Shown: positions 46,339-64,000 of the stretch, one piece after another
Position numbering within the stretch: position 1 is the stretch's first letter
How the letters are laid out: each line of letters opens with the position of its first letter
Assembly (NCBI GenBank): GCA_002189035.1
Contig: NEEC01000020.1
Coordinates: forward strand, 806,001 to 870,000
Length of the DNA: 64,000 nt
Reading direction: 5' to 3'
DNA from: Utricularia gibba
Taxonomy: Eukaryota; Plantae; Magnoliophyta
Made by a program: the position numbers and the translations under genes
Notes under the pieces: generated by a model
What the model saw: only the letters and a program-made list of their open reading frames with translations
Databases searched by the model: none
What the model was told of the DNA's origin: nothing

Positions 46339-48169
46339 GCGTGGTTCCTCGTTCTGGACTGTGATTGGCCCTTTATCCGTTGTTGTGGGAGAGTGGCTAA
46401 GTGGACTGTGGAGATTCCAGTTGGGATTAGTGGGCCCCATGGATGTTTGGATTAAAAAAAGATTCAATTAAATATAAGAATCATGTGATCCATAACCCAT
46501 ATTCGGTCATTTTTGTTTGGATACCCGACCCGAACCCATGGGTTTCGGGACAAAAATTAAACTAATTGTAGATGCTTTATTCATATTATATGATGAACCA
46601 TCCCAAGATGATGAATAATATTTGAAGAATAATAATTATATTGCACAAACAAATACTTTGGATAACAGGATTATTTTACTTGAACTAATTACAATAAGTA
46701 AGAACAATAATATTAAAACTACACTTGAATCTCTACTTAACAATATTGAATTAAAACTTAGACTAAAGTTTTTATGTTCAACTAATTGAAAGTAAATCTA
46801 TCTTAAATCTTGAAATGTGTTTTCATATGTGATATGTGCTATTGGAATTGATGAACATTTCTTTTTATTTAATTTAGATTTAATAATATTATTTTCAAAT
46901 TGTAGAGTATGAATATTTTAAAGATATACTCTTTATAGAACTTTTGGTTTGTTTTATAAATCTTATTAGAAATTCTCTATTTTCTAAATGCTTAGAATAC
47001 TTTTGATTTATGTCTTTCAATTAATAGTATCCAAATATTATTACTCTCAATTTCTTCTCATTTTGAACTATAGTACCTAATTTTCTCATTTCTTTCATAG
47101 TCTATTATTTTGAAGATAAACTTGGATGAGTTCTTTTTTAAATGTTGATTTTTCTTATATTTGTGGGTTGTTAATCTTTTTTAGAATAAAGAATCACATC
47201 ATTTTGTTTTAAAGCTTTGAAATTACTTATATTTATCATTATTTTGTTTTCTTTTGATCTTAATTTTAGTTCTTCTCCTCCTCATTATTAAAAAAAAAGA
47301 TTTCCAATGAAGTAAACAAAAAAAAAAAAAAATAGAGTTATAGCTTTCTCTATATTTTAGGCTTTAATAAAGCAAAAAAAAAAGAGTCGAAATTAAGTTT
47401 ATTCAGGAGGAGTTCTAGATTCACTCTTAGTAGAGTAGCAATAACATCGTGAAGATCAATTGCAAATGTGTAAAAAAAAAAACAGGAGTAAAATTAAACA
47501 TCTATTTTTTTGTTATTTAATATAATTGTCATTTCATTATAAAAATCTCTTTGTTTATTACTTATTTTTCTATTTCATCCATTCCGACAATCTACATATT
47601 TCTTATTGTTTTCTTTTATTTTAATCACTCATTCATTATTATTCACTTGTCACTATTATCTTATTAAAAAAAACTTTTTTTGATATTGTACATTCCTCTA
47701 TTTTATCTTAAAATAAGAAAATATTTCTTCTTCATTTCATTTATTTCAATCACTCATCTTTTATTATTCACTTGTTACTATTACCTCATTTTAAAATTTT
47801 CTTTTTTAATGTCATTCCTCTAATTCATCTTCTCTTTTGTTTATTATTCATCTCTTTTATTCATTTAATTCAACAAACAACCAACTTATTGATCTTATTT
47901 TAATTCAACCTCTCTCTTTTGTTTCTATCTTGACTCAATTATAACTTTTGACTTTATGTAATCTCATCATAACACTATAACCCTTACCAATATGAAAGTG
48001 ATTTAATTATTGGAATATTATGAAATCTAGTACGAAAATATTAAAGTTTGAGAATTGAGTGGTAAAAGCTACATATGATTTCTTTATTATTTCTATTTAT
48101 TTTCTTTTATTTCTTGCTACTTGTTTCTTTTCTTTTGTTTTTTAGAATGTCAAATTCAAAAGGTAACAT

Positions 48170-48730
48170 GAGAAAGATGACTCGTCAAATGAAAAGTTTA
48201 CTTTGAGAATTATGGAACCAGAATTTGCAAGATTGCAACATATTTTAGAAAATATCAATGATAAACTTAATGAACACAAAAATTCTCTTCAAAATTTTGG
48301 AAGAATCCAAGATATGCAAAATAATCATACTGCTAAAAGAGGTCAAAGTGTGTGAATGTCTCAATGCAATTATAGTGAACTTGATTTTAGTAATCAATGA
48401 AATGAAAGTAACATTGGAAGAAGAGATAAAATCCAGAATGATAATGATGATATGTATTTTGAGTAGGGTGAAAATGAGAATATAAATGAAGATAAAAAAT
48501 AATTTCAAGACCAAGTAGTTAGAAGAGAGAGCACAAAAAATGATAGAAATATTAATAATATTAAATTGAAAATTGTTCAATTTAAAACAGAATGATCCAA
48601 ATACTTATCTATAATGAAAAATTCGAATAGAACATGTTTTTTTTATTGTAACAATTACTATGAAGTAAAGAAAATCAAATTAACTTCCATGAAATTTATC
48701 AATTATGCTTTAATTTGGTGGAATCATTTT
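48170..48730 (+). mobile_element. Degenerate Ty3/Gypsy (CRM-like) gag remnant
   Basis: DRNINNIKLKI..F / NDPNTYL**KIRIEHVF.CNNY.EVKKIKL...FINYALIWWN matches the gag pattern IKLKIPxFxGxNDPEAYLEWExKxExVFxCHNYSExKKVKLAxxEFxxYALxWW, with stops and a frameshift. Confidence 0.72.
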
Positions 48731-49739
48731 GCTTTATTCAGATTAGTTTCCATAAAATTCGAGTAAAACATGTTATACTTCCACTTCTATGTTTCACTAT
48801 TTTCATTTTACCGTTTTCAAATAACATAGATTGTAGACTAGGTTTTTAAATATATATTTATAACTCAACTAATGTTTATCAATTAGTACTCACATTCTTT
48901 CTAATAAGTTTATTTACATAGAAGAGAAGTCTCATCCCTTCATACCATTTTTTAAATCATGTTGATGAGATGCATATTATGAATCAATTGTATTGATGTA
49001 AAAATAACATATGCTAAATTGTAAATTGAAAAATTTTAAGCACCCCAATGCTTTATTGATGTGTGGGTAGTTAACAATAGTCATGCAATTTGACAACAAA
49101 TATTGTAGATACTATATTTTTCCTATTTATTTTTTTTATTAATGAGATTAATATTTAAATTGGTCTTTTGAAATAATAAATTGTTAATTTTTAGTTAGAT
49201 ATTTATATCATTTAGACCATGTATATATTCAAACCCAATCATTTTTATAAAAAAAACTTAGGCCTTATTTGGCATGTAGAGTTAGAGGTGATTTATGACA
49301 AGTTTATAAAATTTTGATTGTTAAGTTTATAAAACTTAGCCCCTTGCGAAAAATTGATTATTCAAATAATCCTATTTTATAACTTTTAGCAAATTAACCT
49401 CTTCTAATGACGTAATTTGTTAAATAACCCTACTTTTTATAATATTATAGAATGGGTGTTTGCATGTAAATTTAAAATAATAAAAAATTCTCACTTGTGT
49501 GGATTTGAATATAAAATATCGTTTTAGCAAAGAGGCTTTTATTTTTTATATTTTAAAATGATTAAAGTTTTTTATTAAAGCATATTCACATGTCTGCATT
49601 TAATAATCAATTTAATGCAAAAAATAGTGCTACTAAAGCGAGGTAATTACTAAATTAATTCGCAAACAGCCCACGGCCGTCGTCGTCGTCGTCCTCCCTC
49701 CCTCCCTCTGCTGCAGATCCTCCTTGTTGCCGTACAGAT

Positions 49740-52320
49740 ATGGCGCCTGTTGATCCACATTCTTACACTGATTCGGCTCATCCCTTCACCAATCATATCT
49801 CCTTCTCCTTCTACTTCGATTTCCCTTCATCCACCATTCTCTCAACCGCACTCCTCACTCTCGCGGCTCCGCACTCCGGCCCCTTGTCTCTCGATTCTCG
49901 TTCCCTCCAAATCTCCGCCGTCCTCGATCCGGCGACTCTTAATCCCCTACCTTTTTCCCTCCACCCCACTTCCCCCGACGCGATTCTAGGGCAATCCATC
50001 GTCGCTACGTTGTCTGGGCAGTCGCGGTTACTTATCATCTATAAAACTACTCCTTCCTCTTCTGCCCTTCAGTGGCTTTCCCCTCCTCAGACATCCAACA
50101 AGACGTTTCCCTTCGTGTATACTCAGTGCCAATCCATTCACGCTAGGTCAATTTTCCCTTGCCAAGATACCCCCGCTGCCCGCATCAAGTATTCCGCCAA
50201 ATTGAATATACCCAACTACTTATCTGCCGTTATGGCAGCCAAACATGTCTCCAGAAGGGAGCCTCTTCCTGGTGAGTGCTTTGGTGCGTGTGATGATTCA
50301 ATGTGGTGCAGGGAAGGTAGGGCTGTTGAGGAGTTTGTGATGGAGCAGCCAGTGCCACCTTACTTATTTGCTTTTGCTGTTGGAGAGTTGGTATCTAGGG
50401 AGGTGGGTCCGAGGACCAAGGTTTATTCCGAAGCGGTTCCGAGCTTGTTGGATGCTGTGGCCACGGAGTTTGCTGGTACTGAGCAGATGATCAAAACTGG
50501 GGAAGATCTTTTTGGGCCTTACGAATGGGAAAGATTTGATTTGTTGGTTTTGCCTCCTAGTTTTCCTTATGGAGGAATGGAGAACCCGAGGATGGTGTTT
50601 TTAACTCCAACTGTTATAAAAGGGGATGCAACCGGTGCACAGGTAGTGGCTCATGAGCTTGCTCATAGCTGGACCGGGAATTTGATCACCAACAAAAGCA
50701 ATGACCACTTCTGGTTGAACGAGGTACCACAGTTACTTCTGATCTGGTATATGAGTCTCTAAGGCTCTGGTAGGAATGAAGGAAGCCATTTCCATACTGA
50801 AGTCCATTGTTCTATATGTGTTATGACTTTTTGCTTAAAAGCCAATATGGTCCTTGTGACATCTTGTGTCTAGTTTATTTTGGTATTGCTTTCTTGAATC
50901 GATCACCAAATACTGTTGTTTAGACGAGAGTGCTTCTGTTGTTTATTTGAAGGGTGGTCAGAGAAGTGGGGGAATGATAGAAAAAGGGCCAACAAAACGC
51001 AGAACAGTAGTAAAGTAGACCTTTTTTGAACTCTAGGACCTGGACTGGAGTTGGATTTGAGAATCTATGAATAGGTGTAAAATTTACCTCTTGTTTGAGC
51101 TATAAGTGAAGCAAGAGTCTGTGCTGATGCAATGAAACTACTGATTTATATGTCCCCTGTTAGTTCTTGTGCTGAAATGTCCTAGCTTTGAGACAATCAT
51201 ACTTATAGAAAAGTCAGGGCATATGAAGGTTGATGTATGATGCTCACCTAAAGCTTAAAGCCCATAACTTCATTTCTTTTATGGTGCCGGTTTGATTTTC
51301 CTGTGTCATTGGAACTATAGGGTTTCACAACATATGCTGAGCGGAGAATAGTGGAGGCTGTGCAAGGCAAGGAAAAGGCTGTGCTATCAATTGGCATTGG
51401 CTGGAGAGGACTGATTGAGGAAACAGAGCGTTTCAAGGACAACATGGAGTTCACCAAATTGATAACTGATCAGCAAGGAGTTAATCCAGATGATGTCTAC
51501 TCAGAAGTGCCATACGAGAAGGGATTCCATTTCCTACTACGCATCGAAAGACAGGTGAACTCTTGAAACATTCAGCTTTTTTTTTTTTTTCACAAGATTT
51601 TGATAAGTTTCATGTTGCTTGCTTCACTCAGATTGGCAGACCAGCATTTGATGAATTTCTCAAGAAGTATATCGATGCATTCAAGTTTCAATCCATCGAC
51701 ACATATATGTTCATTGATTTCCTTAAAGCCAATGTTCCCGGCATAGAAGCTCAAATTGACCTCAAAACCTGGACTGAGGGAACTGGCATTCCACCAGATG
51801 CTCTGGAGCCTACTTCCGATGTGTACACAAAGATCATATCCCTCTCAAATGAATTCAAAGACGGCAGGATGCCTAACGAGGACGAAGTTGCCGCATGGGG
51901 AGGTCAGGAATGGGAACTCTACATCGAAAACCTCCCCAAATCCGTTGAGCCTTCTCAGGTAGTCATCTCCACAGCAAGAACTCAGGCATCTACAGAAGTG
52001 TAATTTTGATGATGAAATTGCAGGTATCTGCTCTGGACGAGCGGTACAGGCTCTCGGAATCGAGAAACTACGACGTGAAGGTGGCGTTTCTTCGTCTCGC
52101 CATCTCATCCGGGTGCAGCAACTACTACGCAGAAGTTGAGAGAACTCTGAGAGCAGTGGGGAGGATGAAGTACCTGCGTCCTCTGTACACAGCGCTGGTG
52201 AAACCCAGCAGTGGAGAAGACGGAAAAGTGTTCGCCAGAAGGGTGTTCTCCGATGCCTGTGGCGGCTACCACCCTATCGCTCAAGGCGTCGTGGAGGCCA
52301 TCCTCGCGAAGCATTCGTGA
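49740..52320 (+). CDS. LKHA4: Leukotriene A4 hydrolase-like M1 zinc aminopeptidase (613 aa)
   Basis: Exons 49740-50723, 51321-51554, 51632-51958 and 52024-52320 are in frame. Motifs: MAPVDPHS, QCQSIHARSIFPCQDTP, GGMEN, HELAH...NE|G (HExxH-x18-E), VPYEKG, GRMKYLRPLY. Confidence 0.96.
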
Positions 52321-52849
52321 ACTCGAGTTCCGCTGTTTCATGTGTTGTACTGGATGGATTATGGGTGTCTGAAGGGATGATAATTTTAGTTTTGAGATTT
52401 AGAATTAGATTTTCATTATAAATTATTTAACAATAAGAAATGGAATATTGTCATATGCATGAAATTTTGAAAAATGACTTAACACGTCCTGACCTATAAT
52501 TAGGATAGGGTAAATTTTTTTATTGCATCAAGAACAACTTTAATGTTCTATAATTTAAATCAAAATCATTTTAAAAAATCATAAAACACAATTTATTTTT
52601 TTAAAAAATAAAAATAATAAAAAAGATATAAATTTTATTTATAAACATAAAAAAAGTGAAATAAAATACTAACAAAGATATAGAAAACACAAATATAAAT
52701 AATATAAAATTATTTATCATACATATTTAAATAGTTAATACATGTATTTCTATTTAAAACTTATTATAACTCAAAAATCTAAAAACTATAATGGGACAAA
52801 GTAATTTAAGGATGTTATAAAATGTAATGTGATGTATTTTTATAAAAGG

Positions 52850-52969
52850 AAGATTCAAATCTTTATATATTTCAATTGTAAGATCCAAATTTTCATTTAT
52901 TTCAATGATAAAATTCAAATCTCGGTGTATTTCAATAATAAGATTCAGATCTCCTTATTATATTTATAT
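52850..52969. repeat. 30-bp minisatellite, about 4 units
   Basis: Units of AAGATTCAAATCT....TATTTCAAT.AT start at 52850, 52880, 52910 and 52940. They explain the KIQIFIYFN repeat in ORF 52829-53248. Confidence 0.8.
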
Positions 52970-54215
52970 AATCTGAAAATATTCATATATTTGATTTTTA
53001 AGATTTTTCATATTATTCAAATTTGTACAATTCATAAACTATTGGGTTTGGATTTATCTTCAAATTCAATTAAAAGTATTATAAAAATTTACAAAATATA
53101 TTCTTCCTTACTCTTAAATTACCATAAAATATATAAAATTAATGAGAAAATCATGTATAAAATAGGTAAAAATAATCATATATGGTTACAAAGGACCATA
53201 ATTGAATGTAACAGCACATCACTTCACATATTTAGTAGATGCGTATAAAATAAATTATACAAAAAGCAACAAATTGATTGATTAATAAAATTTTCATGAG
53301 ATGGAGTTTTCAATATAGATTATTCAAATGTTTATGAATCAAATATATATTAAACAATATGTTTATCAAATGTCACAGTCTATATTTGTCTTGTACGATA
53401 TTATTCGATTTAATCATTCAACTCTCACAATTTTATACATAATTAATATAATCCATTTATTTAAGTATGTACTCTTCCCCAGCCTTAACAATAATACACC
53501 CATCCTTGTAAAATTTTTTAACTGAGTATGATTAATTTTTTCACACTTTATTAAGTATAATCAAATTTATAATACACACATTTTTAACTAATATGGAAAT
53601 ATCATCACTAGACTCCTAGCCGAATTTCAAATACACATAGTTTTCAACACATTTGTGTTTGGAGTCGTAAACAACCTTACTAAATACCACTTAAAATGAA
53701 TAAATATAAAAAAGATATTTTAACTCTCTAAATTTTCTTTATTTTGCGTTTAAATAAAAGGAAAAAAGGAATTTAGATAAATTTGCCAAAATAACCGTTC
53801 TTTATCTGGGAGACGGAACCTAATTGGTCACACGTGCTATCAATCTCAGCCCTTGAAGGCGCATGCAATGATCCAAGCCGTTGATCTTCCCTTCCTCCTG
53901 CTATATAATAACCCGTCCCCAGCTTCCCTTTTCTTGACCAGCAGTTCCGTTTTCGCGAGAAACCGAATAGCCCGCCCTTTTGGAACCTGGAGAAATAAAC
54001 CATATACAGACTCTCATCAAACTTGTTCTCCTTTGTATCTAGGGCTTAAAGTACAAATCTCTGAAGAATTTGCCCTCTTTTTCTCCGATTTCGTTAGGTT
54101 TGCGATGGAATTTCTTGATTTGTGTTGATATTGATGGCGTTGTTCTAAAATCATAATAGATTCGTGGTTCTTCAGCGTGTTTCGGAGGCTCGATCTGTTT
54201 TTTTGGTGGGAGATT

Positions 54216-55575
54216 ATGATGAATCAACAGCAGCAGCATCAGCAGCCGCCGCCGCCGCCATTGATGAGCTTGAAGAACCACAATTTGATAAACATGAATC
54301 AAGCTCCAGTGCAGGTAACGTTGTTGTTTATCTTTGTTGAAATTCTTCAGCTTTTTTTTGAATATTTATTTTTTTATTTGTCATCATCTGCAGATGCTTC
54401 CTGTGCGTGTGGGCTATGGTATGTGGCCCCCACCGTCACACTTTCTTTCCTCAAAACCAACTGCTGGGGTTGTTCCTGGTTTTGAGAAATCGTTGGGTCC
54501 AAGGAGTGACTGGAACGCCAGGAAAGTGGCTGGTAGTAACAACCTTAACGATAAATGGAGAATTGAATACCAGAACGTGGCAGCAGTAGTTGGTTCAGGT
54601 GGTAAAATGATGGGGGTTGCTGCTGTGGGGAATTCTTCAACTTTTACGTATCAGCCCCCTAATTTGAATGAATTGCAGCATCGAAATCGATTGAAGATGA
54701 AGAAGTTTATTCCGAAAAGGAGGTTCAACAAAAATGGTGGTTTTAACTTGGATATTGTGGATCATAATGCTTTTTACCATAGTCGTAGTAGTAGGTCTCC
54801 ACCTTATGCTCCAAGAAATACCACTTCTTTTATAATCAGAGCAAAGAAAAGTGGGGGTATAGCATCATTGGTATCTCCTTCACCAGCGACACCTGCGATT
54901 TTGCCCTCTCCTTTTTTCTCTCCATCTAGAGAAATTTTGGTGGATATGGCGAAAGAAGAATGGGGTGTTGATGGATATGGATCAATGAAGGGGTTGATCA
55001 GGTTGAGGCCCCCTGGACATGAGAATGAGGAGGATGAAGGTGGTTCAAGTGACATTGATGCGGAAGAGCATGTTGAATTGGAGCGGAGACTGGACCATGA
55101 TTTGAGTCGGTTTGAGATGATCTACAATCCAAAGAGTAACAATCTTTCTAATAAGGAATATAATAATGTTTTGGAAAATCGCGTTGATGATCAAGATAGT
55201 CATATTGCCCAACTGGAGGAGGAGAATTTGATCCTGAAGGAAAGACTGTTCTTGATGGAGAGTGAGTTAGGAGATTTGAGAAGGAGAATGCAATATTTGG
55301 AGGGAAAACACAGTGGAGGTGAAGAGATGAATGAGGAAGTAATGGAGAATGACTCGGAGAATGAAAATGAGAGTCGTGAAGAAACGAATAGGCCTGAAGA
55401 ATTCAGTGACGAGAAAATTCACCTGGATGCATCTTCCTCAGGTCAAGATGCAGATAACTTCGATGTAGCCACTTTTGTAGATAAAAACATGGTTGCAGCT
55501 ACTGATGAAAGCATGAATCTTGGACCCTCTGAAGGCAATGGAACGATTGAGATGCAATTTGCTGATGATGATTAG
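54216..55575 (+). CDS. PRL1-interacting factor A-like protein (426 aa); candidate HEXIM-like protein
   Basis: Exons 54216-54314 and 54394-55575. Q/P-rich N-terminus; conserved plant block PPYAPRNTTSFIIRAKKSGGIASLVSP...KEEWGVDGYGSMKGLIRLR; coiled coil QDSHIAQLEEENLILKERL; acidic tail. The family name is recalled from At5g19900. Confidence 0.88.
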
Positions 55576-56998
55576 AGTTTTGAATGATCCATCCTCGATC
55601 GTGACTCAGCTGAAATTGAGGGAGTTATTGAAGAGGAAACAGATTTTACTTCTTTGCTCAACATGTGATAAGGGATGATAGTATGGAGTAAAGTGTGCCA
55701 TAAAGTTGTCCCAGCTTATGGAATTGGACTACCGTAGCTTTCACAGTTACAGGGGAGCTAGTTCGTAGATACTGCGTTTTTATGCTGATGTGGTTCATTC
55801 ACTCTTTTGCCTTGTATAGCAAACTGTGAGCTTGAGCTCGTGATTCCATCTTATGTCTGGGTGAAAACTTGCCAGTGGAATACAAGAGGACGTTGTTCCT
55901 TGGTGGGCTGCCTCCTAGACGAGCCAAGAAAAAAGTATATCTACAGGCTGCTCCTCACATCAAAATCAGGGGTGAAGGAGGGATGACAGGGGAGTGATCA
56001 GGGATAGAGGCAAGGAACAAGGGTAAATGGAACGAAAATGAGACTTCTACATGAAAAGGGGAGCCAGCCTACTTCAACTGTGATGAAATCTTCAAAGCTG
56101 GTCCGAAGGGTAAGACTCTTTTCTCATTGGTTTTGTGAATGATTCAAGAGATAGCTGCTATAAACGAGGTGTACCGTCAAGATACTTACTTAAAAGGTAT
56201 CATGGATAAAGATTGACATTTAGGTGTAGTAGTATCGAACTGATTCAAAATATACGATAGTTTATTATCTTATCTTCACTTTTGTTCAATTTTCTCTCTT
56301 CATCTGCTTATTCTTGAGTTGCAGATTATGCCCATTTTGCTCTTTTGATTAAAATTGTTACACAACTCTGTTGAAGTTGTTCAGTTTGGCTCACTAGGAA
56401 CTTCATGAGCACTCTCTTCAGTCTCTCCATTCCTCGATCGAAGCCCCTGGCTCTCCCTTTTCTTCCATCCACGTCCAGCCGGTGCCCTCCCCCGAAAAAC
56501 TTCGAATGTGGCTGGGGCCGATTTAATCGTCTGCTCGACGGGAGGGGTTTGGAAGATGGAGTGTCCATGCAAAGGAGCACGAAGCCTCCACAGAAGGGGA
56601 AGTTCGGAAGAAAGAATCAGACACCGAGAAAAGCTTCCTGAACCGAGAGGCTTCATCTCATGTCTGAAAAATTTTGCTGCTGACTGCAAAAATGTGCCCC
56701 TGAGATCAACACTTGCACCTCACAAAAGGACATTGCTCTACACTACATACGTGTAAAGTGACAGAAATCCTACAGCAAAAAGAAGCAGATTCATGTGTGC
56801 CTTCTGACTCCGAGGAAACTTAATGAAAATATTAATATATAGAGCTGTACAATAAAGGTAGTAAAGGATTTTCGTGTCCTATGAGAGGAGGCGGTTTGAA
56901 ATAATTTTTTTTTTAAAAAATTGTTATGCATACTATTAAAAAATAGTAATTTAGTCTACATCATTAAAAAAGAAAAAGAAAATATCAATATAAGCATA

Positions 56999-57675
56999 GA
57001 ACTATAATTGGTTTGAACTAGAACTACAATTCGAAATATAACTATATGGTTTCGGTTCAAAATATTTGGAATCATGGAACCATCGATTTTGATTTGTACG
57101 GAATCAACTGGACCAATAATTCGAAACTGTGAATATCGGTTCGTATTAAAATATTCATTAAAACATGCAAGGCACTCATAATGAATTTGACAAATACTCA
57201 TAATGATTCTATTAGCGTATTGTGAATTGCGAATCATCTATAGTATATCGTGAACCATGAACTATTGATAATGCATTGTTTCTAATAATGTATTTGCCAA
57301 ACACCCATAACGATTGCTATAGATGTTTAGGATCAATTCTGAACATCCATATTATAGGTATCTAGAAATAGTTTTATAAAATTAAAATTTGTTACACAGA
57401 CACTTATAACGGTTTGCGCGGATGCCTCAAAAACGCATCATTCATTTAAGGAATAACCATCCTATTCCAGTTTCAGTTTGGTTCAACGGTTTCGATTTTG
57501 AATCAAAACCGTTGGTACCTATTCTAGTTTTAGTTTAGTTCAAAGTTTCGGAATCTGATTCCGAACCAAAACCAAAACTTTAGTGTACAACAAACTATGA
57601 TTTACAAACTAACGGTGCGAAAAAAACATTCAGTTCCGACCCGAAACCGAATGGTTGGGACCGATAGCACTACTC
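56999..57675. mobile_element. Probable non-autonomous DNA transposon (hAT-like subterminal repeats)
   Basis: Bounded by the direct repeat TATAAGCATA (56989-56998 and 57676-57685), with many GGTTC/GAACC/AACCG motifs near both ends. The TIRs are weak. Confidence 0.5.
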
Positions 57676-59538
57676 TATAAGCATATTAACGTAATTCTTT
57701 CAGAAATTGAGAAGCTATCAAACGGCGTCGTTCCAATCGAATTTTTCATTTGAAAACCTTTCTGGGTGTCGGTCACATGAACATTTGCCCTTCGGACTGT
57801 TGGCATGTGAATGGCGGATGCCGGATTCACTTGCGACACAAGTAGAAGGAAATTGTTTTCTTGTCTGAAACTGTAGGGGCCCCGCCCCATCCACGACCTC
57901 CAACTTCCAACATGATGCATGCCGGTAGTTAACACAATGTTTGAAATTCAGAAATATTTTGAATTTTTAATTTGGGGAAGATGATATTGAGAGTGATTTC
58001 ACAATTTAGTTTCAAAGATCAATAATAATATTAAGAGAGACGTTGTGATTACTGATGAAAGGGATGGTGAAACTCGAGAGAAAGATTCCTCTAATTGCTT
58101 TGTGTTTAGTTCTTTGTAATTGTGTTATGACTCTTGTTTTTTAGTATTGTAACCTTTTTGTGATCCTTGAGGTGGAATTAGAGAGTTGGGCAGGATGAGC
58201 ATTGCAAACTAGGAATCATGATGATGCAGCATTGCAATGTCATCCCCAAACCGAGCTTCTACCGATTTGTCGAGTTTGAGCTGGGAGAGCTACATGTTGG
58301 AAACCCATGCATTTTTACTTTGAAATTTTCAAAAAAAATATAATTTGAGATAGACTTGAATTGAACATTTAATCTTTAACTTTAAAATCTTTTACTAACT
58401 AAGTTACGAGTGTAGATAATATAATTCATGTCTGTGTAAATATATATACATCAATTACGCCTATGTAACTTCGTAATGCATTTATGGACATGATTTATTC
58501 TTAAACTATGCTCATGTTGCTTCCTGATGCATATATAGACGTAATTTATATATAAGCTATATTCATGTGGTTTCGTGATACATACACGAGCATGATTTAT
58601 ATGCAATTTGTACTCATATTGCTTCATAGTACATACACAGCGTGATTTTTTTAAATTTGTGAATTAAGGATTTAATTTCGATTCATTTTAATTTTTTTAT
58701 TCTTATAAAATTAAAATTAAATAAAAAAGAATATTAAGAAATCGAAATAATTAATTAAAATATTGAAAATTCTATTAATTTTAATTACTTGTAATTTTTC
58801 ATAAAAATAATAATAATAAATTAAAATATCAATTACATATATATATATCTAAGTTTGTATTTCAACTTTTTATAAATAAACATTATTTATTTTTATTATG
58901 TTTATCAATATGATTTTATTGAAATAGAGATTTATTTTTGGATAAATAAAGAATAAGAAATTTAACAATAAATATTAATAGCATTATGATGAATTTTGCA
59001 TAGATTTATTTTTATCATTAAAATTATGAATTCAATAGATAGAATGAATATGCGTGAAGCCTATTTAAAAATAAATATTAAAAAATATTATACTCAAATA
59101 ATATTAATGATTCCTAATTTTTATATATTTAATTATGCTATTTTAAATTTTGGATGTGATATTATTTATTTTAATAATTATATCGCTCACATTTTTTCAT
59201 AAAAAATAGTCAAAACAAATTAATTTCTATCACGGGTAGAAAATAGCTACAAAAACCAATTTTCAACTAAATCAATCTTAATTACAATTAATTGATGTTA
59301 ATCATACCCGTTGACAGTCAGATGGCAGAATCGTAATTTGGGAGGTTTTTTTCGATTTTCTCTTCTCGGAATTGGAATTATTATTATTATTATTTTAAAG
59401 TAAAAGCTAAAACAAAAGCTTTGTCTACAGTTTGCTTGGTCATTCGACTCGTTTTCCTTCTGCATCTTCTTCGCGAACTGCTTTTACCAACAACTTTGCG
59501 TCTAGGGTTTGGGCTCAGCGGATTAGATAAGAGCAGAA

Positions 59539-60810
59539 ATGGGGCAGCAGTCGTTGATCTACAGCTTCGTGGCGCGTGGGACGGTGATCCTTGCGGAGTA
59601 CACTGAGTTCACCGGTAATTTCACCGGCATCGCCGCGCAATGTCTCCAGAAGCTCCCTGCCACCAACAACAAGTTTACCTACAACTGCGACAATCACACC
59701 TTCAATTACCTCGTCGAGGACGGATTCAGTAAGCTCAGGCTCCGATCTCTAGATCAGGGATGCATTTATATCTTGTTCGTGTTGTTTTGCTCTTATTTAT
59801 TGACTCGGGAAATTTCCTAAAATTAAACGGTATTTGAATCTGCATTGATTGGATCGATTTTTGGCTGTGTGATTTCGTCACGATGGCACAATATCTTTCT
59901 ATTGCGAGCTTAAATCTGTTTCTTTTTAACAGCGTATTGTGTGGTGGCTGTCGAATCTGTTGGGAGGCAGATTCCTATTGCATTTCTTGAGCGGACCAAG
60001 GAGGATTTTATTAAGAAATATGGCGGGGGAAAGGCTGCCACTGCTGTTGCTAACAGCTTGAACAAGGAGTTTGGGTAAGTTCTCATTTTGTCATAGTTTT
60101 TGTTTCCATATTGATGACTGGGATAGCCATATAAATCAGACCCAAGCTCAAGGAGCAGATGCAGTACTGCGTAGATCATCCGGAGGAGATCAGTAAGCTT
60201 GCAAAGGTGAAAGCTCAGGTTTCAGAAGTCAAGGGAGTTATGATGGAGAACATTGAGAAGGTGAACTCATAGATAGAATGCTTCTCTATTGCCTTTTTTT
60301 TTTTTTTTTTGTTGAGATGTCTCCTGAATTCATTTAAGTAGTTGAGCTACACTTAGAAATGATTCAAGAATCGGATGCTATCCGCAGGTTCTAGATCGTG
60401 GGGAGAAAATTGAGCTTTTGGTGGATAAAACTGAGAACCTTCGCTCTCAGGTCTGTCAATTCATCTTCAGTCATCAATAGGAAGTTTCAGCTTTCTTGAT
60501 TCTTTCTTGTGAATTCAAAATATTTAATGGGACTACCCAAGTTCATGTCTCTTTAACATGGGTTTCTCATACTCCTATTGTCTGTTTTTCTTCTTGTCAT
60601 TACCATTGGACTCATTTATTATTATTCTAATAATGTGATATGATGTTACCCTTGGGCTGGCAGGCACAAGACTTCAAGATGCAGGGTACGAAGATGAGGA
60701 AAAAGATGTGGCTGCAGAACATGAAGGTAAAGCTTATTGTCCTCGCCATCATCGTTGCCCTGATCCTCATCATCGTCTTATCGGTTTGCCATGGCTTCAA
60801 GTGTCACTAA
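59539..60810 (+). CDS. VAMP72: Vesicle-associated membrane protein VAMP72 (longin R-SNARE), 220 aa
   Basis: Exons 59539-59728, 59933-60074, 60140-60260, 60388-60450 and 60664-60810 total 663 nt. [14 protein letters not shown] longin domain; [18 protein letters not shown] (zero-layer R); C-terminal TM segment and CHGFKCH*. VAMP721/722/726 cannot be resolved. Confidence 0.97.
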
Positions 60811-62779
60811 TACCTTACCCTCATCCATCCTCCCTGGGCATCAGATTCACCTCTGCTCCCCTGATTCTTTTGAGCCTCATCCAGTCTCTGTCCTTCAGTA
60901 TAGTGTGTGCTACTTCCTTCTTCTTTTACATTATCTTGCCGTGATTATTATGATGCTGTGCTGAAATGCTTGGTTTTACAGTACTATGAATATGATACAC
61001 TGCCGTATTGCATCATAATGCAACCAGAGCCATGTCCTCTTAGAGCAAAATGCAACCAGTATCCACTCCTCATAATGTAGGTTTGAGTTAGGAATAACGA
61101 ACGTGTTTGAAACAGAGTGTCAAATATGAGATATTGCAAGAGAAAGCATGGGTCTGCAATAATAAGTCCAAACCTACATTTAGAGAGCAAGCCCAAAACA
61201 AGACTAGCCTCATCATTAGACAACGGTAAACTACAACACTAAGGACGTAAGGTAGTAGTTTTTATTTGCAATTTATAAATTAAAGTAAAATTAAAAGCAA
61301 ATATTTTACAAAATACCTATAATTATTTTAAAACTTAACTTTTACTTTTATTTATTTTTAACTTATTTCAATTTTAATTATTTCATTTATTTATTACATA
61401 AGTTAAGAAATGTGATTTATTCAATAAATAAGTTGCTTAATTTCAAATAAACTGTGTCTACTTATTTTACATCTACTTGTACAAAAAATTTACTTATGAG
61501 TTAAGTAAACATTATTGATTAAAACGTACAAACTATACTCTAAAGATCTGCTTGGTACAATATCAACAAACAACTCTAAAAAAACTAATTTTAGAAGCAC
61601 TTTAATTTTTATTGGAATAGGAGTCCCTCAACTTTTCAAAGAATGAAATACTTTACTATGTCAACTCTATGTAGAGCAAAAATAGTACGCATTTTATCCA
61701 AAAATTATTTTTAAAAATACTTTTATTGAAGTTAAAAGTTATACTAAATAGACTCTAACAAACATCTGAACCTGCAACCAACAATCATGAGACATCTATC
61801 TATAAATGGTAGAAAGACATGTACATGTAACAATGTGAATGCGTTGTAGTTGGAATTACACATGCATTTTTCTATTTATGGGATGCGTCGATATGAACTA
61901 AGACATTTTTTTTTCATATTGGCTCGTTCAAGAACCATGAATTGTGTTTGAAATACTCAACACATTAAACAAGAAGGAAGGAAGAATAAGTAGTGGCATT
62001 TGGCATGAGAAGAAATCACATGTTGTGATTGATTATGAGCCATGTTCCTGACCAGCAAATGCTCCAATAAACTCTCCAAAGGTGCTAATCTGGTGCAAAT
62101 ACTTGTGCAGCAAGAGTGGATGTGGGAAATAGATCAAATAATAAATTAAAAAATTGGTTTGGAAAATATTTTAGGAAGCTTCAACTCTTTATCATGCCAA
62201 AGTTGCACTCGATGTTAATGAAAGAGCAAATGTGACAAGTTCAAAGTAATTTGGTAGCTTGGAATAAATTGATTAAGCAAACTAGAGTAGCAGATTAAAC
62301 ATCCATAATGGAATAAATTGGTTAACTTTATTTTTTGATTAAACATCAATAATCTTTTTAAATTTTAATTCTAGTTATATGTTATGTGTCAATTTTGTTT
62401 GAGTTTTAAGATTTTATATTGATTTTTACGTTTTGTTAATGTTTAGGTTGGAAAAAAAAGAAAACTCTTCACTTTTTTTTTTAAACAAAAAAGAAGTGAA
62501 GATGAGATTGAAGAAGTTTTTATTATAAAATTATTTCTAATCATACTTCAATTGCAATAGAAAATCAAGGTAGGATAATAAAGTCGTTTTCAACAATGTT
62601 GATTTAATGGTTTTCTTTGACTAGAGTATTTAAAAAATAAATAATAGGCATGTTTATTGGTTTCCTTGCTTCTTATTCAACAAGAGTGCACAAAAAGAGG
62701 ACGAACTCATGTTTTCACTATATGTATTTTCTTCAATTGGAAAAACATGAGTAATAATAGGAATTATTCTTTTTTGACT

Positions 62780-63190
62780 CATATAGATTCTGATTCATCA
62801 TCTTAGTACAATAAGATTGTAGATGATTGCCATGTTTTATTGAAACAATCTAGACACGGATTATATTATCAAAGTGCGCAATAAACAAGAAACTAAAGAC
62901 AATCGTTTATGTTTACAAGTTTCAGTGTCAGCAATTAGCTAGCTTGCATTTTAAGGATGTGACTTTCGTGATCATAATATTGAAAATGGAGATAATTTTA
63001 TTGATTTGATTGAACTTCTAGTAAGCTTCAATCCTGATATTGAAAATGTTGTGTTAGAGAAAACTTTACATAATATTAAATCCATATCACCTAACACTCA
63101 AAATCAAATTTTGGGTCTTTATGCAAGTACTATTTGAAAGAACATTTTTGAGAAGATTGAAGATTGAAAGTTTTCTATTAAAGCATCTTT
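62780..63190 (+). mobile_element. hAT transposase remnant (ZMYM1/DUF4371-like region)
   Basis: Broken frames give DNRL.LQVSVSAIS*LAF*GCDFRDH and NGDNFIDLIELLVSFNPDIENVVLE...KSISPNTQNQI, matching RWLAFQGxxFRGH and GNFxELxxLLxxxNxxIxxVVLxNAPxNAKYTSPxIQKEI. Confidence 0.75.
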
Positions 63191-64000
63191 AGTGATTTTC
63201 GAAAATGATGACATGGTTTCCTTTATTAAGTTTTCATGAGGAAATGGAATTTACTAAAAGTGATTTCCAAAATATAGAATTTACTCAAATTAATCATTTC
63301 CGTAAAAATAAAAGTGATTTCCGGAAAGCCATGTCAGCATTTCTGGAAATCACTAAAGATGCTTTTATTGTGTATGAAATTTGTAATATTTCTAAACAAG
63401 AACAAATAACATTGATAAACAAATTTTTTGATCACCCTCAACATTTAAAAAAACTGGCATGTTATTCTTATAGAACTCTTGTTGGAAATGAAATATTGAT
63501 ATGTACATCGTATTGGCGCAGCATGATTTCAAACACCATGATGTTATCGTATGCTACATATTTATCCACAAAACCCAAATTCCATCAGTAACCTTATACG
63601 AAAAAATAAATGTAGCATATTTATCATTTTTAGGAAGGTTTAGGAAATTTTGTAGCGACTCTCCACACATGATCAGGATAACAAAAGCAGTTGTATTTGG
63701 GGAGAGTTTGCGGCATTCTGGTTCTGAAATTCAAGTTCTAATGTTAGTGAAAACTAGACGCAGAATGTTCTGTTAAAACATGTACAAAACATTGTTTTCG
63801 TGTCTTGTTAGAGATTGGATGAATAGGAAGTGGGTAAAAATTATTTGTATCATTTATCTATGACTTTAAAAACTGTTCTTTTATAGATGAAATTACAACA
63901 GCCAGATTCACATTTCTCACGCTTCTAACACTTGTCGAACTTTAGTATCATAAAATAACAAAGACTATGTCTTGTCTTACGCCAATGCTACGCATGATTA

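Follow-up and report, generated by a model that had tools for sequence, protein, structure and literature searches.

The stretch of Utricularia gibba DNA considered here, referred to below as the window, comprises 64,000 nucleotides (nt) of contig NEEC01000020.1 (GenBank assembly GCA_002189035.1, positions 806,001 to 870,000 of the forward strand). Between window positions 54216 and 55575, on the plus strand, lies a gene for a divergent protein of 426 amino acids (aa) that belongs to the PRLI-interacting factor A family, which is found throughout streptophytes and includes Arabidopsis At5g19900. This family has in common with HEXIM1 and HEXIM2 (PF15313, IPR024872), the animal 7SK-dependent inhibitors of P-TEFb, a short motif of the form A-P-x-N-T-T-x-F-[IL]-[IM], and the HEXIM-like character of both the motif and the architecture that surrounds it is supported by the comparisons described below. 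That the family is remotely related to HEXIM, or at least analogous to it in function, is given a probability of about one half here.

Gene structure and family membership

The first exon of the gene (54216-54314; this and all other features described are on the plus strand) starts with the ATG at 54216, is directly followed by GTAACG and encodes 33 aa of a Q/P-rich N-terminus, which begins with MMNQQQQ and fits the PRLI-interacting factor A family consensus MN.Q..MMNQ, the Q-rich start of the relatives. A GT..AG intron of 79 nt (54315-54393), delimited by splice signals read in the sequence, separates it from the second exon (54394-55575), which encodes 393 aa plus the stop codon and contains all of the conserved parts. 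Joined together, the two exons yield the 426-aa product, in frame with the family alignment. A share of 0.90-0.91 of the words sampled from 54150-55650 is present in RNA-type runs of the same organism, roughly as expected from a transcript that lacks the 79-nt intron, which provides indirect support for splicing. The locus is probably an intact gene, and it is probably expressed.

Exon 2 matches 831 plant proteins, many of them named 'PRLI-interacting factor A', with the best matches in Lamiales (E 2e-127, 57-66% identity). The similarity extends over the full length, and all conserved positions of the family core, namely Y-K-P-P, APRNTTSF, YGSM.G.IRLR, RLD..LSRFEM.Y and LEEENL.LKERL, are present, which places the protein in this family. 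The named members range from the zygnematophytes Mesotaenium and Closterium through Marchantia and Riccia up to angiosperms, and the family is therefore at least as old as the common ancestor of zygnematophytes and land plants. An exhaustive profile search returned 227 cluster representatives. Bridging relatives were sought without success in this search, where the best 150 of the 227 matches all belonged to the plant family, and in a search that started from the most divergent alga, which returned zygnematophytes and one grass only.

The Arabidopsis member, AED92763.1 (494 aa), is taken as At5g19900 because four papers use this locus name together with 'PRLI-interacting factor'. In the literature searched, At5g19900 appears in gene lists only, and no functional study of it was found there; nor was any paper found on the origin of the family name, which we take to be a yeast two-hybrid catch with PRL1. 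The window protein and At5g19900 have a common conserved core, the former being shorter (426 aa vs 494 aa). Relatives are about 450-560 aa long, and no database protein identical to the 426-aa product was returned; the window copy is either a divergent paralogue or comes from a species that is poorly represented in the database. The basic cluster (N-W-K-G-K-K...) that precedes Y-Q-P-P in the family is eroded in the window copy.

The HEXIM 'PYNT'-like motif

In human HEXIM1, a basic region is followed by P-Y-Y-K, the linker helix 171-194, the segment 202-PYNTTQFLM-210, an acidic region and a coiled coil, in this order; Cdk9 is bound and inactivated by 202-PYNTTQFLM-210, which is unmasked once 7SK occupies the basic region (PMC12901311). 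An earlier note on the locus, made from the DNA letters alone, had read three blocks in HEXIM order in the plant protein, and the blocks are indeed found exactly as it gave them: positions 54679-54726 encode HRNRLKMKKFIPKRRF, positions 54808-54837 encode APRNTTSFII and positions 55090-55239 encode LDHDLSRFEMIY...HIAQLEEENLILK, the distance from the His of the first block to the Pro of the second being 44 residues.

The middle block, which belongs to the motif PYAPRNTTSFII (54802-54837), is the best supported part of the finding, with evidence from family conservation, hhalign and BLASTP. Among 87 family members, on which all conservation counts of this work are based unless another set is named, P-x-A-P-R-N-T-T-S-F-I-I is nearly invariant: N is found in all 87, A and P in 86 each, S in 84 and the first T in 81, whereas the second Thr is T in 70 or S in 14, and the aromatic position is F in 73 or Y in 14. 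A lack of conservation of APRNTTSF across orthologues, which by the earlier note would speak against the proposal, is thus not what is observed. At the variable position, the counterpart of the PYNT Tyr, 75 members have R, 5 have Y, 3 have F and 2 have L. A short paralogue from Kalanchoe fedtschenkoi (UniRef100_A0A7N0UEN0, labeled P0222) reads F-A-P-Y-N-T-T-S-Y-I-M at residues about 108-120, with the animal-type Tyr, and APFND.SF or APYND.SF occurs in other short paralogues.

For the comparison of profiles, the HEXIM set was obtained by a search of metagenome contigs for codons that spell PYNTTQFLM; this yielded 88 loci and, from their open reading frames (ORFs), 37 non-redundant proteins. All 37 match PF15313 (best E 5e-49), and a profile built from them retrieves 2GD7 and 3S9G, both structures of the HEXIM1 coiled coil. 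Against this set, which was selected for exact PYNTTQFLM and whose nine motif residues therefore cannot vary, hhalign gave a probability of 47% for a shallow eudicot alignment, 91.5% (P 8.5e-7) for a diverse 29-member plant alignment and 94.4% (P 8.7e-8) for 40 representatives at <=70% identity. The aligned stretch always comprised 22-26 columns around the motif, placed on the Cdk9-binding PYNTTQFLM of HEXIM, and a forced global alignment (93.6%) additionally matched the plant Y-x-P-P to the HEXIM K-P-Y and the two coils to each other. The real hhalign score of 52-60 is more than 10 standard deviations (SD) above those of 60 column shuffles (13.2 +/- 2.9, maximum 27), and a reversed alignment scored 26.7. 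At the level of the motif, the likeness to HEXIM thus appears to be real and chance is a very unlikely explanation; on these scores, P-x-A-P-[R/Y/F]-N-T-T-S-F-[IL]-[IM] may be regarded as a statistically supported match to HEXIM 202-PYNTTQFLM-210.

The Pfam HEXIM model (PF15313, gathering threshold 29 bits) is free of the PYNTTQFLM selection bias. When family members were scanned against 24,736 Pfam families, sub-threshold matches to it (11-17 bits, E 0.0076-0.4) were seen for 17 members of the divergent set of 29 and for 22 of the 87, always at profile positions about 11-53, and HEXIM was the sole non-coiled-coil family that recurred across members. What the earlier note mainly claimed, that a PYNT-like motif of the HEXIM type lies among parts ordered as in HEXIM, has accordingly stood up, at the motif, in profile-profile comparison (91-94%) and in an unbiased Pfam scan. 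In single-pair BLASTP comparisons, 7 of 12 residues are identical between the window protein and a HEXIM2-like ORF (E 0.02), and the APYNTT-bearing Kalanchoe member matches an invertebrate HEXIM along 38 residues, the linker included, with E 2e-4.

Language-model searches, where scores <0.9 are by the tool's own grading leads only, gave HEXIM clusters as the nearest named family for a plant core query (score 0.77, 16 of the top 100) and again for plant residues 156-310, from which the motif is excluded. With an invertebrate HEXIM as query and PF15313 clusters removed, the top three results were plant PRLI-IF-A clusters (0.77, 0.76 and 0.74), so the plant family and HEXIM are reciprocal nearest non-self neighbours among 7.7 million clusters, which is notable even at these scores. 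Chibby and Geminin come next in both lists, and part of this embedding signal is therefore attributable to a general type, the small acidic coiled-coil nuclear protein.

Architecture of the protein around the motif

A model of the monomer, obtained with AlphaFold2 (AF2) from the 87 sequences, is mostly disordered (mean predicted local distance difference test score, pLDDT, 53), with helices at exon-2 residues 91-102, 185-190, 227-238 and 257-307. The segment upstream of the motif (54649-54726) comprises the Y-Q-P-P block, whose Y, P and P are kept in 66/87, 70/87 and 75/87 members, the predicted helix 91-102 and the basic patch HRNRLKMKKFIPKRRF. The helix, which lies between Y-Q-P-P and the motif, has been modeled with modest confidence (pLDDT about 71); a helix between basic region and motif is likewise present in HEXIM1, at 171-194 (PMC12901311).

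Directly after the motif comes a cluster of Ser-Pro/Thr-Pro (SP/TP) sites, SPxPxTP..LPxP.FSPS (54874-54927), in which the S, P and T positions are invariant among 25 eudicots and for which no counterpart exists in the HEXIM alignment. By their sequence, these would be sites for proline-directed kinases, a point of interest should the protein's partner be a cyclin-dependent kinase (CDK). The next element is the Y-G-S-M module WGVDGYGSMKGLIRLR (54961-55008), a part that HEXIM does not have: Y195, G196, S197 and M198 are present in 87/87 members, from algae to angiosperms, and within the family only the motif Asn is equally invariant.

The acidic tract ENEEDEGGSSDIDAEEHVELE (55021-55083, exon-2 residues 210-230), read in the sequence, is an E/D run kept in the family; located between the motif and the coiled coil, it takes the position of the acidic region of HEXIM (PMC12901311), the likeness being in composition only. 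Further downstream are a short helix with ERRLDHDLSRFEMIY (55072-55125, AF2 helix 227-238), in the region of which (ERRLD..LSRFEM.Y) R, D, F and E are kept in 79, 80, 82 and 84 of the members, and a long C-terminal helix of about 50 residues (55162-55314, AF2 helix 257-307, pLDDT up to 98), which includes LEEENLILKERL and is predicted to form a coiled coil. The protein ends in an acidic disordered tail (55315-55575 with the stop codon, pLDDT <50) that is unconserved in the alignment.

The plant protein and HEXIM1/HEXIM2 are thus alike in having a short helix upstream of the motif, an acidic tract downstream of it, and then a second short helix and a long coiled coil at the C-terminal end (helices and coil being predicted in the plant protein), with the remainder disordered and the overall size similar. 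The order of parts is that of HEXIM, namely K/Q-P-[Y/P], short helix, motif, acidic tract, short helix and long coiled coil, with two exceptions: the arginine-rich RNA-binding motif (ARM) is missing, and the SP/TP-plus-YGSM segment is inserted. Compared with HEXIM, no bipartite ARM can be aligned in the plant protein, the acidic tract is set apart from the motif by about 45 extra conserved residues (the SP/TP cluster and YGSM), the FSETYE/CycT-binding pattern has not been recovered and the scores stay under the Pfam threshold.

The basic patch HRNRLKMKKFIPKRRF had been proposed as the counterpart of the HEXIM RNA-binding region. In the global hhalign alignment it lies on the HEXIM linker helix, and the N-terminal parts alone reach only P 0.64, so its assignment as the ARM equivalent has been rejected. 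Nor does the plant protein show an alignable bipartite arginine-rich RNA-binding region directly before the position of W-K-P-Y, and RNA gating is unsupported for the window copy because no ARM-like region is alignable. The equation of Y-K-P-P with the W-K-P-Y block was also abandoned: hhalign places the two together, yet not significantly, at the same P value.

A candidate plant counterpart of HEXIM

HEXIM/7SK control of P-TEFb has been tied to animals and their closest unicellular relatives, with HEXIM orthologues in Holozoa and patchy HEXIM-like sequences elsewhere, the non-animal HEXIM-like proteins being those of choanoflagellates, ichthyosporeans, a colponemid and a glaucophyte; for plants, the kinase CDKC/CYCT1 has been described, without NELF and without a known brake (Chivu et al., bioRxiv 10.1101/2023.02.19.529146). 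Judging by their sequence, PRLI-interacting factor A proteins are credible, as yet unproven candidates for the role of P-TEFb brake in plants. Given the order of parts that they have in common with HEXIM and the reciprocity as embedding neighbours, a distant relationship or a mechanism like that of HEXIM is plausible, with the odds for it about evenly balanced. By the definition of Pfam, the family does not belong to HEXIM.

Under a HEXIM-like mechanism, the protein would dimerise via its coiled coil, and the dimer would dock on a cyclin-T-type CDKC complex, the plant counterpart of P-TEFb, where the PRNTTSF motif would occupy the cleft of the kinase and inhibit it in the manner of a pseudosubstrate. 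YGSM and the SP/TP cluster would then be plant-specific additions that may serve docking or phospho-regulation in place of the 7SK switch of HEXIM. We know of no 7SK partner in plants. A more far-reaching version, in which streptophytes from zygnematophytes to flowering plants carry an ancient HEXIM-type CDKC/CYCT inhibitor with a switch rewired to YGSM/SP-TP, and possibly to an RNA that is not 7SK, is tentative and would be held by us with some doubt. No publication describing a plant HEXIM was found in the literature searched. Small, largely disordered CDK-cyclin inhibitors with short conserved motifs do exist in plants, namely KRP/ICK and SIAMESE/SMR; these differ from the window protein in their cell-cycle targets CDKA/CDKB, in their unrelated motifs and in the absence of a C-terminal coiled coil, and none of them was among the results of the searches made here.

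Evidence against a HEXIM relationship and alternative explanations

Numerous observations weigh against a relationship to HEXIM. The significant similarity is limited to 24-26 columns, essentially one short motif, and short motifs can arise by convergence; the profile-profile comparison proposed in the earlier note gave a probability of 91.5-94.4% over this length, with hhalign scores that are probably inflated by the PYNTTQFLM-selected HEXIM set. None of the family members reaches the Pfam HEXIM threshold (11-17 vs 29 bits), and the window protein itself shows no HEXIM match even at E 10, only coiled-coil noise. A PDB sequence search with the window protein did not return HEXIM1, nor did the plant-family profile find any HEXIM1 chain in PDB at E 10, where HEXIM1 is represented by its coiled coil only. 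The language-model score of 0.77 is below the level at which it would be more than a lead. After removal of the motif, the plant and HEXIM N-terminal parts give P 0.64 in hhalign and pair only Y-x-P with W-K-P, and YGSM, the most invariant element besides the motif Asn, has no counterpart in the HEXIM alignment.

The C-terminal parts, treated in the same way, give P 0.0018 and a score of 26.4. Reversal of the HEXIM coil lowers this only to 25.4, and among 60 heptad-block shuffles 4 score no lower than the real alignment, so the coiled-coil likeness is generic. The coiled-coil match put forward in the earlier note is hence at background level and has been rejected as evidence for HEXIM; the predicted C-terminal helix also yields sub-threshold matches to many coiled-coil Pfam families. 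The likeness of LxxD[FL]SxxxxxY to the HEXIM FSETYE did not hold up either, as hhalign never paired the two, locally or globally, and the CycT-binding F267/Y271 pattern of HEXIM remained unaligned in the global alignment. The BLASTP-plus-hidden Markov model survey of Chivu et al. has no Streptophyta entry in its HEXIM supplementary files, and no data on an interaction of the family with CDKC/CYCT1 were found in the literature searched.

The replacement of the PYNT Tyr by Arg in the window protein also counts against HEXIM, as had been conceded in the earlier note. The objection stands insofar as Arg is found in the window protein and in 75/87 members, and it is weakened by Y or F in 8/87 members and by the occurrence of K (Sphaerothecum), H (colponemid) and P (C. 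elegans) at this position in HEXIM and HEXIM-like proteins (supplement, PMC11482795). Given these substitutions, Arg at the Tyr position is not disqualifying. The non-animal HEXIM-like proteins are themselves divergent, with APKNTTQFLL or TPHNTTQFII as the motif and partial Pfam matches over the first third to half of the model; those that appear in the Pfam output of the authors nevertheless score 30-41 bits, above the threshold, and keep W-K-P-Y, whereas the plant family does neither.

These observations may be accommodated by two other explanations. The protein could be a plant-specific disordered coiled-coil adaptor unrelated to HEXIM, with the likeness of PRNTTSF being a chance or compositional coincidence, and could work via YGSM and the coiled coil in another nuclear complex, which we consider unlikely. 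One candidate is PRL1 of the Prp19/MAC complex, to which the family owes its name, presumably through a PRL1 yeast two-hybrid catch. An adaptor of this kind would fit with the significance of one short motif alone, the Pfam matches below threshold, the background level of the coiled coil and of the N-terminal part, the modest pairwise BLASTP E value of 0.02 for the window protein, and the two plant modules, YGSM and the SP/TP cluster, that HEXIM lacks. However, the motif in question is the conserved core of both families, and coincidence is hard to reconcile with an hhalign score >10 SD over column shuffles, with a scan of 24,736 Pfam families that singles out HEXIM at one position in 22 members, with the reciprocal nearest neighbours among 7.7 million clusters and with the common order of parts.

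Alternatively, PRNTTSF could be a functional short linear motif that arose by convergence, with no HEXIM ancestry, its partner being another proline-directed enzyme, such as a MAP kinase (MAPK), CDKA/CDKD or a phosphatase of the carboxy-terminal domain (CTD). The short length of the match, the invariant SP/TP cluster directly after the motif, the lack of detectable homology outside it and the predominance of Arg in the family at the position of the Tyr important in human HEXIM1 would all be expected from such an origin. Nonetheless, convergence would have to account for 7-8 of 11 positions and for the same arrangement of flanking parts as well, which asks a great deal; Y or F occupies the variable position in some members, and the language-model similarity is retained when the motif is left out. 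This explanation appears to us improbable, more so than an unrelated adaptor. A remote relative or functional analogue of HEXIM is, on this balance, the reading that we carry forward.

If the family does inhibit CDKC/CYCT, plants would have a dedicated regulator of RNA polymerase II Ser2 phosphorylation and elongation, At5g19900 mutants would allow a direct test of the long-standing question whether early elongation is regulated in plants, and in what way, and the evolutionary story of pausing control would change. If the inhibitor is in addition ancient, HEXIM-like elongation control either predates the split of plants and animals or represents a striking convergence. If the family does not inhibit CDKC/CYCT, an unstudied family that extends from zygnematophytes to angiosperms still holds two invariant motifs that are worth a function.

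Additional observations

Several of the metagenome ORFs collected as the HEXIM set deviate from the canonical block upstream of the linker. In the PF15313-positive ORFs L005, L024, L034, L050 and L088, W-K-P-Y before the linker is replaced by K-W-E-G-E-(R/K)-T-P. HEXIM ORFs from marine metatranscriptomes (L007, L015, L018, L036, L041, L058 and similar ones) have F/Y-R-P-Y-Y-Q-L in place of W-K-P-Y and a Ser-rich tail that ends in a conserved E-D-T-G-Y-E-S-T-Q-S-K; they resemble the Calanus (copepod) sequences in the supplement of Chivu et al.

No Rfam family was detected in 48000-64000 of the window, a result that is uninformative on a partner RNA encoded elsewhere. Upstream of the PRLI-interacting factor A gene, a 340-aa ORF at 49740-50762 of the window (plus strand) matches Peptidase_M1_N (E 2e-11) and Peptidase_M1 (E 3.5e-21) and probably represents one large exon of a gene for an M1 aminopeptidase.

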